From the NCBI RefSeq assembly GCF_040938485.1, contig NW_027271024.1, positions 1,922,001-1,986,000 of the forward strand: 64,000 nt of DNA, given 5' to 3'. The stretch comes from Diadema antillarum. Its lineage: Eukaryota. A program made the position numbers and the translations under genes. Below, one piece after another: positions 6,201 to 9,200 of this stretch. Each line of letters opens with the position of its first letter. The stretch's first letter is position 1. Below the pieces are notes generated by a model. That model was not told the origin of the DNA. It searched no databases and saw only the letters and a program-made list of their open reading frames with translations.

Positions 6201-9200
6201 CTTTTGGGTAAAGAAACTAAATGTCTAGTATAGACAGCTTTGCAAGTGGCAGCTGAGAGCATTTGCCCATAAAGTGTATAAGAGCACTCCAGGGCCCTAT
6301 TTCATAAAAGATGTTAGAATAGTAACTCTTGCTGGAGTGGCAACTTCCCATAGCAACAGCCAATCAAGGAAGCTGGATTTTTGTCATTACTATGACAACT
6401 GCCATTCCAGGAAGAGTTGCTTTCATATCAACTTTCTATAAAATGGGGCCCAGATATTTGATTCAAGGCCCTACTGCTATAAATCAAACTATAAACAAGC
6501 CACAGTCTCCTTGAACCAAATTAATCTAAAGCCAGAAATCATACTGTAGTCGCCGCGCCACATCCAAGACATCTTTCGCTGGCATCGCGCCCCGGGCTTG
6601 TTGAAGTCGCAGGCCGCACACACTGCCTCGTCCACCATTGCTGATGGCTGAAAGTAGAGCAAATTAGGTGAGAGATTATGTCTTGTTACGTGTAGAAACA
6701 GAGGCAAGAAAAGAAAATATAATAGAGGCACACAAAGACGATGCCTGTCGCCAACGCACACCATGATCAAACGACTGCTTCACTACCTGGTTTACGATAT
6801 GATAAGACTTTTCACTTTTGCCCGCCTTACAACCCCCATGAGCTGCTTCCCTCCTCAATTCTCCTCTTGCTAGGCTTCTCCTCTGCCAAGAAACGATCCG
6901 GATAGGACGACATACACATGGTGCAACCGGAAACCTTTCTCCCTCATGCTATTAAAGACTGATGTGCGGGTTACAATATTTTTGCACCAAAGAAATAATG
7001 TGCAGCCTTTGGTGGCCAGTTTATCCCGGTGACAACAAGTCTGAGTGTGCTCTGGTAGGTGTTTGAGAAACATATGTTATAGCAAAATTAGGTCGTCCTC
7101 AACATGTTAATGAAGGCTGCTTTTCTCAGAGTGAATCAAATTTGGCTAGGCTTGTACCTACAAACATACAATTACAACTGTATATGTGTCTGAAAGCTTA
7201 GACAAATTATTTCATACTAATAAACACCCTCTACTCCATGCCGTGGCCATTTTGTTCACTCAATGATGCGTGATTAAACAAACCAGCAATTCGGGTTTTC
7301 ACTCTCTGTGAAATCGATCATGCCAAATACATGTATGTACACACATATGAACACATTAAAAAAAAAACACATATAAGAGTACTTGTTCAGCTCCTCTGTA
7401 CACTACACGTAGTTTACAATGAGATAACATACTACTGACTCTACTACATTTCATGAGTCTTATCCAGCTAGCATGACTAGTTTCATATTGTGGTTCATTA
7501 TTGATAGATTACTTAAGAAGGCAAACAATTTCTTAACTGCAAGTAAAAAACATTCATTTGACAAGTTTGACAATACATGTAATTGTGTCAAACAGTGGAC
7601 TCCCGTTATAACGAAGTCCTCAGAACTGGTAGTTTTCTTTCATTGAATAAGAATTTTGTTATAACATAACAAATAAACTATAAAAATACATAAAGTGGAT
7701 AACGTTACGGCCCGAATTCTTTACTTCGTTGTAAGCGGAATTTTGTTGTGACCGTGTTCGTTATAACGGGAGTGCACTGTATGGCTTCACACCGATTGTA
7801 TAAACAGAAATGATGCAAGAGATGAGAAGAAAGAGGAGGAGTTTCTGCCTTTACCTGAAGCCTGTTGGTGAGAATGATGTTGGGGTACATTGCACCGACG
7901 TCAAGATGGTAGATGACCGGGTTCTCCAGCCGGGCGGGAGTGTCGCGGAGAGCCGCTAGCTTCTCCTTGATCTCTTCACAGACCTGACCATGATGATGAC
8001 GACGATGATGATGATGACGATGATGACGATGATGACGATGATGATGAGGATGATGAGGATGATGATGACAATGATGATGGTGATGAGAAGGAGGTGGAAG
8101 AGAAGAATGCGAATGATAATGGTGATGGACATGATGATGGCGGCGGTGGTAGTGGCGGTCAATGATGATAATGATGATAATGATGATGATGATGATGATG
8201 ATGATGATGATGACGATAATAATGGTGGGATGATGATGACGATGATGACAATGATGACGATGATGACGAGGTGGAGGAGGAGGAGAATGCGAATGATAAT
8301 GGTGATGGACACGAAGATCATTGCAAGGAGGATGATGACGGAGGTGGTGGTGGTGGTGGTCAATGATGGTGATGGTGATGAAGAAGATGATGATGATGAA
8401 GATGTGGCAATGATAATGGTAATGATAGTAATGTTTGTGGTGATATTCATGATGACGATGATGTAGAAGGGAGGGCAGAAGAAAAAAAAATCCTTTGTAT
8501 AAGAATCACTAGGCCAGAACATGTATCATGAATATATAACAGACATAATTCATCTCTGTTACTTAGTACATATGTAGTCAATGTAAAATTGAAAGAAAGC
8601 AAACAACAGAAAACGCAAATATATTGTGGGTAATATTTGATCATGTACAGTTGTACCGATATGAGAAGGCAAGAAGTGCAGCGCTACTCATTAAAGGGCT
8701 GCTTCAGGTTCTAAAGTACATAATCTAAAAAGAAAGGAAGAATAACATTAGAGTAAAGAATTGGATACTACAGTATCAATTTGTAGATTCACTTCCCATA
8801 TTTTCAATATCAGATATGACAGTAAACATAGCAGGATTTTTGTTGTTGTTGTTGTTGTTTAAATTATCCGTAAATGAGGTCTGCTTAAATACAAAATACC
8901 CACTGATGGCACAAGTACTTTTTCCAAAGTTATACTGAGGGAATAATGGCACAACTGGCTTTCTATAATGATAAGAATGACGATACGGTCTTCAAAATCA
9001 AGGGTCCTTCATGTACAAGAAGAAGGGACAATGAAATGGAGTACAGACACTGACAATGATGAGGTTAAAAGAGAACCATCAATTTTTACAAGTTTTTTTT
9101 TTTTAAACTCACTTCCTCAAAGTTAGTGACGGTGTTGATGGGTATCTTCTCTTCAACCTCGATGGCGTGCTTCATGGTCCTTTCCACATCGTCAATTAGC

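Follow-up and report, generated by a model that had tools for sequence, protein, structure and literature searches.

A CAT-rich repeat and a long AG-free zone before the exon 14 acceptor of the POLE gene in Diadema sea urchins

Long stretches without AG dinucleotides upstream of a 3′ splice site can mark distant branch points, but only one fifth to one half of the AG-free zones of at least 100 nt are estimated to do so (Gooding et al., 2006; PMC1431707). A named source of long zones that lack a distant branch point is a repeat without AG next to the 3′ splice site, as in the 369-nt zone of IDB1079466.8106, where the real branch site lies at -17 (PMC1431707). Most human branch points are located 10–60 nt from the AG; distal ones coincide with U2AF2 binding, are enriched upstream of skipped exons and account for only a moderate share of productive splicing (PMC5378181). 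Here we describe an exceptionally long AG-free zone in the gene of the catalytic subunit of DNA polymerase epsilon (POLE) from the sea urchin Diadema antillarum. The 5′ half of this gene occupies the minus strand of the analyzed 64-kb stretch of contig NW_027271024.1 (positions 1,922,001 to 1,986,000, assembly GCF_040938485.1), which is called the window below and to which all positions refer. The zone precedes exon 14 and largely coincides with a CAT-rich array. With a probability of roughly one half, the sequence data point to productive branching within this array near the AG, the pyrimidine tract at its far end being a relic or a minor entry site.

Upstream of the intron-13 acceptor, the transcribed strand contains no AG for 507 nt (8492–7986), and the next AG is encountered at 8494–8493. 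This is the longest AG-free gap on the transcribed strand of the entire window, followed by a run of N, and the zones at the 18 other POLE acceptors of the window measure 18–67 nt. The array upstream of the CAG contributes 476 of the 507 nt. An original prediction, made from the letters of the window, had estimated the zone at about 506 nt, pointed to a tract with 26 pyrimidines in 28 positions (8490–8463) and proposed a candidate CTTAT with its A at 8500. All of this is confirmed by our counts, the motif being situated at 8503–8499 and its A 517 nt from the exon. The tract is rare, as windows with at least 26 of 28 pyrimidines occur only twice in 16,257 nt of POLE intron, the second one 45 nt upstream of another acceptor. 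CTTAT matches yUnAy at five of five positions, and A8500 lies 9 nt upstream of the U9-led tract. Thus, a consensus branch site with an adjoining polypyrimidine tract is present at the 5′ end of the zone, as is typical of the distant-branch-point class. A long AG-free zone, another characteristic of that class, is found in all three Diadema sequences compared: the window haplotype (L082; JBFRCO010000136.1, 100% identical to the window) with 507 nt, a second D. antillarum haplotig (L081) with 531 nt, and Diadema setosum (L083) with 482 nt.

The gene structure was derived by spliced alignment with an open reading frame (ORF) for coral POLE on a metagenome contig (L001), which placed 20 exons from 19141 to 98. 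The exon 14 peptide matches residues 599–640 of human POLE from end to end (solved structures; E about 1e-16), and its join to exon 13 (TNFEE/VCEEIKEKL) is present in all three RefSeq protein models, two from D. antillarum and one from D. setosum. Other animal loci, including vertebrate-like ones, have an intron at the position of intron 13. The intron-13 acceptor of POLE serves an essential exon and is anciently positioned. The exon length of 129 nt is a multiple of 3. An exact look-up of six ORFs of the window returned no match.

On the transcribed strand, the array (8462–7986) is composed of 175 C, 155 T, 118 A and 29 G. Tandem Repeats Finder reports a period of 3 with 92 copies over 7990–8266. 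At a larger scale, two internal copies of a longer unit were recognized (Table 1), and the two halves of the array align at 75% identity over about 296 nt. Based on these identities, the array consists of a composite unit of about 190 nt (180–200 nt) that was duplicated in tandem, overlaid by CAT slippage and microsatellite runs. The array had initially been described as a 477-nt (CAT)n repeat; its length stands, whereas the simple (CAT)n structure has to be replaced by two diverged copies (75–87% identity) plus microsatellite runs. RNA folding yielded -31.6 kcal/mol for the 546 nt of the array region, compared to -99.8 kcal/mol for a neighbouring intron piece. A structure bridging the 517 nt was rejected, because the region is less stable than its own shuffles (-31.6 versus a mean of -36.8 kcal/mol). 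With the spacer RNA almost unstructured, no helix is predicted to shorten the distance between a distal branch and the AG.

The frame of exon 14 is open through the whole array (8505–7708, minus strand), giving 266 codons rich in His, Ile and Pro. Since the frame is open, an AG that arises in the array at a distance from the exon divisible by 3 would result in an in-frame insertion and not in a premature stop. This long H-frame ORF was rejected as coding, being a by-product of composition, and a coding or antisense exon within the array was likewise dismissed, since the acidic GAT frame of the plus strand has a stop in each unit. Three more CAT-type arrays are located in POLE introns (10222–10380; 13814–13914 and 14267–14380; L082:41294–41555). 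All three are antisense to POLE and hence GAU-rich in the pre-mRNA, and the acceptor array alone has the sense, pyrimidine-rich orientation. The acceptor array was not regarded as a copy of a dispersed element, as its likeness to other arrays is at the microsatellite level only.

The same composite array is found at the same place in both D. antillarum haplotigs and in D. setosum. The three sequences differ by substitutions and a few small indels in multiples of three, resulting in spacer lengths of 451, 476 and 500 nt, and the distal tract and CTTAT are kept in all of them. The second haplotig is 97% identical to the window haplotype in the intron. No CAT array was detected in the orthologous intron of the three outgroups examined, Lytechinus variegatus, Strongylocentrotus purpuratus and Acanthaster, whose acceptors are ordinary. 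In L. variegatus this intron comprises 501 nt, ends with …aaaacT13CTTTGTCTTAG and is free of AG over 65 nt; in S. purpuratus, intron and zone measure 265 and 67 nt, respectively, and the zone of Acanthaster is 18 nt long. The long zone is thus kept within Diadema and absent in these outgroups. A search for a diadematoid outgroup nearer than the camarodonts yielded Lytechinus and Strongylocentrotus alone, and a scan of metagenomes with the exon 14 peptide retrieved 80 eukaryotic POLE loci, none of them near enough to align the intron. Since the array is present in all Diadema sequences and absent from the outgroups, this comparison indicates a repeat restricted to the Diadema lineage that predates the split of D. 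antillarum and D. setosum. The units have diverged by 13–25%, compared to about 6% between the species, which suggests that the unit duplication is several times older than this split. Two hallmarks of zones caused by repeats are found here: a repeat that lacks AG by composition coincides with the zone, and in orthologues free of the repeat the zone is short and the acceptor normal.

In a word search combining the coral protein and the exons of the window, the nearest relative protein was from D. antillarum, with 98% identity over the first 466 exon residues of the window; the corresponding 90% protein cluster contains the two D. antillarum RefSeq proteins and the one of D. setosum. The POLE haplotigs of GCA_040938485.1 are annotated as separate genes (XP_071480194.1 and XP_071488388.1), apparently a haplotig duplication and not a pair of paralogues. 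Within intron 13, the second haplotig carries a 766-nt insertion (L081:12719–13484, at about 8692 of the window) with the terminal inverted repeats CCCTAAAAGGGCCGG… / …CCGGCCCCTTTAGGG. This insertion, probably a DNA transposon resembling miniature inverted-repeat transposable elements, has no copy in the window. It is absent from intron 13 of the window haplotype and of D. setosum and therefore is probably polymorphic.

The Diadema-lineage repeat very probably split an older pyrimidine tract from its AG. The distal tract (8490–8463) is likely to be the former polypyrimidine tract of the acceptor, because such tracts are rare, it lies at the exact edge of the array and the Lytechinus acceptor has a U-run. 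Local alignment of the Diadema distal tract with the acceptor regions of Lytechinus and S. purpuratus matched the T-run alone (P = 0.057), and intron 13 cannot be aligned even between Lytechinus and Strongylocentrotus; tract homology therefore cannot be demonstrated by sequence. The idea that a microsatellite grew inside the acceptor of an essential gene is retained insofar as a repeat lies between tract and AG; the distant branch point that had been deduced from it is a candidate beside the proximal CTCAT motifs of all three sequences.

These motifs belong to a proximal region that is less unusual than it had seemed. The acceptor had been characterized as lacking a normal pyrimidine tract and the array as containing only weak YTNAY matches. 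Pyrimidine runs are indeed limited to 2 nt, but the pyrimidine content (0.60 at -4 to -23 and 0.65 at -4 to -43) is inside the range of the other POLE acceptors (0.55–1.00 at -4 to -23), and the U content of 0.35 is within that of the 18 other acceptors as well. Matches do occur in the array, but not all are weak: strict yUnAy motifs (CTCAT) are located at -62, -71 and -101. In addition, the array contains 82 UnA cores. In all three Diadema sequences, most repeat units have such a core, and the pyrimidine content is comparable to that of other POLE acceptors. The nearest CTCAT is found at -62 in the window, at -50 in the second haplotype and at -47 in D. setosum, which corresponds to the upper part of the usual human branch-point zone (10–60 nt; PMC5378181).

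Our favoured explanation starts from the finding that a CAT-rich repeat arose directly before the AG of the intron-13 acceptor in the Diadema lineage, very probably leaving the former polypyrimidine tract and CTTAT about 480–520 nt upstream. The array might have been tolerated for being pyrimidine-rich (69%), unstructured and AG-free on the transcribed strand; with these properties, the first AG reached, and hence the mRNA, would be identical for every possible branch point. Productive splicing would branch within roughly the final 100 nt of the array, either at the CTCAT motifs at -62 and -71 or at recurring UnA cores. The CAU repeat would serve as a weak pyrimidine tract, aided by the consensus cag/G and a purine-rich exon start. 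The distal tract may still bind U2AF and give some long-range lariats. The absence of AG would be mainly compositional, and purifying selection may add to it.

Several observations weigh against productive branching near the AG. Within 60 nt of the acceptor, no pyrimidine run exceeds 2 nt, while the longest runs at the 18 other POLE acceptors measure at least 4 nt; the distal CTTAT with its U9-led tract has the classic layout of verified distant branch points; and at the rate of the sibling arrays, with 9 AG in 636 nt on the CAT strand, 477 nt should contain 6.75 (P about 0.001). All three would suit a distant-branch-point intron, in which U2AF is bound to 8490–8463 and U2 to CTTAT at A8500, while the AG 6 nt downstream is sterically skipped. 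In the second step, the first accessible AG would then be reached 517 nt away across an unstructured CAU spacer, and new AGs would capture splicing and be removed by selection. We consider it a possibility to be taken seriously, although not the one we favour, that exon 14 is constitutively spliced from such a repeat-created branch about 517 nt upstream, kept in at least two Diadema species. It would account for a tract that is one of just two such windows in 16.3 kb of POLE intron standing at the exact array edge, for the retention of branch site and tract in three sequences, none of which has an AG within 482–531 nt, and for a spacer that is nearly structure-free. Precedents are nPTB exon 10, with a zone of 438 nt and a predicted branch at -389, and PTB exon 11, with a zone of 381 nt (PMC1431707). 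However, the predicted or supported distances cited are all shorter than 517 nt, distal branch points characterize slow splicing and exons that are regulated and skipped rather than constitutive and essential (PMC5378181), and candidates at conventional range (CTCAT, -47 to -62) are available in all three Diadema sequences.

Neither conservation nor the lack of AG settles the matter in favour of the distal site. D. antillarum and D. setosum are 95% identical in the segment with branch site and tract, 94.4% in the array and 93–96% in well-aligned POLE introns. No conservation beyond the neutral intron level was detected for the array or the distal elements, and the whole 3′ 770 nt of intron 13 are uniformly similar between the species (about 94–100% identical). 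Consequently, retention of the distal elements is uninformative, and conservation cannot tell whether the distal site is still used. As for AG avoidance, the CAT strands of the three sibling arrays, divided into four control stretches, served as controls. Because purines in this repeat stand mostly at every third position, AG is best judged against purine-purine dinucleotides, and by this measure the depletion is not significant: the ratio of AG to GA is 0/4 in the array and 9/8 in the controls (P = 0.083), and AG compared with all other purine-purine pairs gives P = 0.11. Of the 29 G's in the array, 17 are part of CG, which results from A>G transitions in CAT, a change that cannot create AG. 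AG would be created by 5 of 477 transitions and 142 of 954 transversions, and the chance of finding none among the roughly 18–40 substitutions of the three sequences is 0.04–0.35. Moreover, one control stretch contains no G and is AG-free for 262 nt on the non-transcribed strand, where it has no role in splicing. The earlier claim that selection keeps the array AG-free is therefore weakly supported, as the low P value of about 0.001 is obtained per length only; purifying selection against AG in the array is possible. An AG within this branch-like array with its weak tract would be a competing acceptor wherever branching takes place, so that AG avoidance does not discriminate between proximal and distal branching.

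Two further explanations concern the array itself. In vertebrates, inclusion of an exon is repressed by YCAY clusters that directly precede it (Nova RNA map). The array contains 91 YCAY motifs in 477 nt and has persisted since before the split of the two Diadema species, and skipping of the motif-A exon 14 would be in frame; it could thus be conceived as a regulatory platform for a KH protein of the Nova/Pasilla type. This is improbable, since constraint does not exceed the neutral level, the haplotypes differ freely in array length, other POLE introns contain similar arrays in antisense orientation and no isoform lacking exon 14 was seen among the RefSeq models. Even less credible is an assembly artefact, or collapse or expansion of the repeat. 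Assembly errors are common where microsatellites abound, but the same composite array appears in both D. antillarum haplotigs, which were assembled independently, and in the chromosome-level assembly of D. setosum, and two DNA runs hold 60–78% of the sampled words of a 1.7-kb stretch.

Table 1. Positions of intron 13, its flanking exons and the sequence elements discussed (window numbering).
Feature	Position	Strand	Basis or remark
Exon 13 (…TNFEE)	9113..9220	-	Donor gtgagt at 9112; joined to exon 14 in RefSeq proteins P0122/P0010/P0121
Intron 13, 1129 nt, phase 0	7984..9112	-	Spliced alignment; position common to vertebrate-like and cnidarian-like metagenome loci
CTTAT, candidate distal branch site, A8500 at -517	8499..8503	-	Same letters in both haplotypes and D. 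setosum
First AG upstream of acceptor	8493..8494	-	5′ limit of AG-free zone; 6 nt downstream of A8500
Pyrimidine tract, 26/28 pyrimidines, T9CTTCTGCCCTCCCTTCTAC	8463..8490	-	Ancestral polypyrimidine tract, presumably displaced
CAT-rich array of 477 nt, degenerate; 69% pyrimidine, 29 G and no AG	7986..8462	-	Nearly unstructured as RNA
Unit copy 2 of internal duplication	8228..8318	-	87% identical to 8048–8138
Unit copy 1 of internal duplication	8048..8138	-	87% identical to 8228–8318
Two strict yUnAy CTCAT, candidate proximal branch sites, A8054 (-71) and A8045 (-62)	8044..8057	-	Motif match
Acceptor CAG	7984..7986	-	Junction cag/GTCTGT
Exon 14, 129 nt, VCEEIKEKL…, polymerase motif A	7855..7983	-	Spliced alignment and human POLE match

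Elsewhere in the window, two related short interspersed elements with similar translations were observed in POLE introns on the minus strand (7780–7700 and about 19020–18900). A run of 61 G is located upstream of the mapped POLE exons (20668–20728), and two-copy tandem duplications with periods of 159–277 nt are present at 22120–22451, 44900–45423 and 52039–52343.

As the same mRNA would be produced by either route, the question concerns the mechanics of splicing and not the function of POLE. If the distal site is used, a housekeeping gene tolerates a 3′ splice-site search across about 500 nt at no visible cost. The distance from branch to acceptor would then be among the longest known for a constitutive exon, providing a natural experiment on the reach of the second-step AG search, for which the three spacer variants would be ready-made test material. 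If proximal sites are used, a CAU repeat with pyrimidine runs of at most 2 nt can, in a sea urchin, make up the entire 3′ splice-site region, and the intron would be a clean example of long AG-free zones over-predicting distant branch points.

Microsatellites at 3′ splice sites are known from CFTR exon 9, with (TG)m(T)n, and from APOA2 intron 2, with (GT)n, where they span tens of nucleotides and modulate exon inclusion. Like these, the POLE array is a repeat in or next to an acceptor and compatible with splicing, but at about 480 nt and with its composite structure it differs from such simple repeats. With the distant-branch-point exons, namely alpha-tropomyosin exon 3, PTB exon 11 and nPTB exon 10, the POLE acceptor shares a zone far longer than 100 nt, a consensus site and strong tract at the 5′ end of this zone, and an AG within 12 nt of the candidate branch point that would be skipped (PMC1431707). 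Unlike those exons, POLE exon 14 is constitutive and essential and not a regulated cassette, its zone consists of one lineage-specific repeat that is not conserved outside Diadema, and candidate branch sites at conventional range are available. The repeat-caused zone of IDB1079466.8106 is similar in that orthologues without the repeat have short zones, as do the camarodont urchins with 65 and 67 nt (PMC1431707). It lacks, however, a good site and tract at its far end, where the pair in POLE is excellent, and it has a good site at -17, whereas the nearest strict yUnAy in POLE is at -62. The POLE feature thus belongs to a known kind, the long AG-exclusion zones, which include those caused by repeats.

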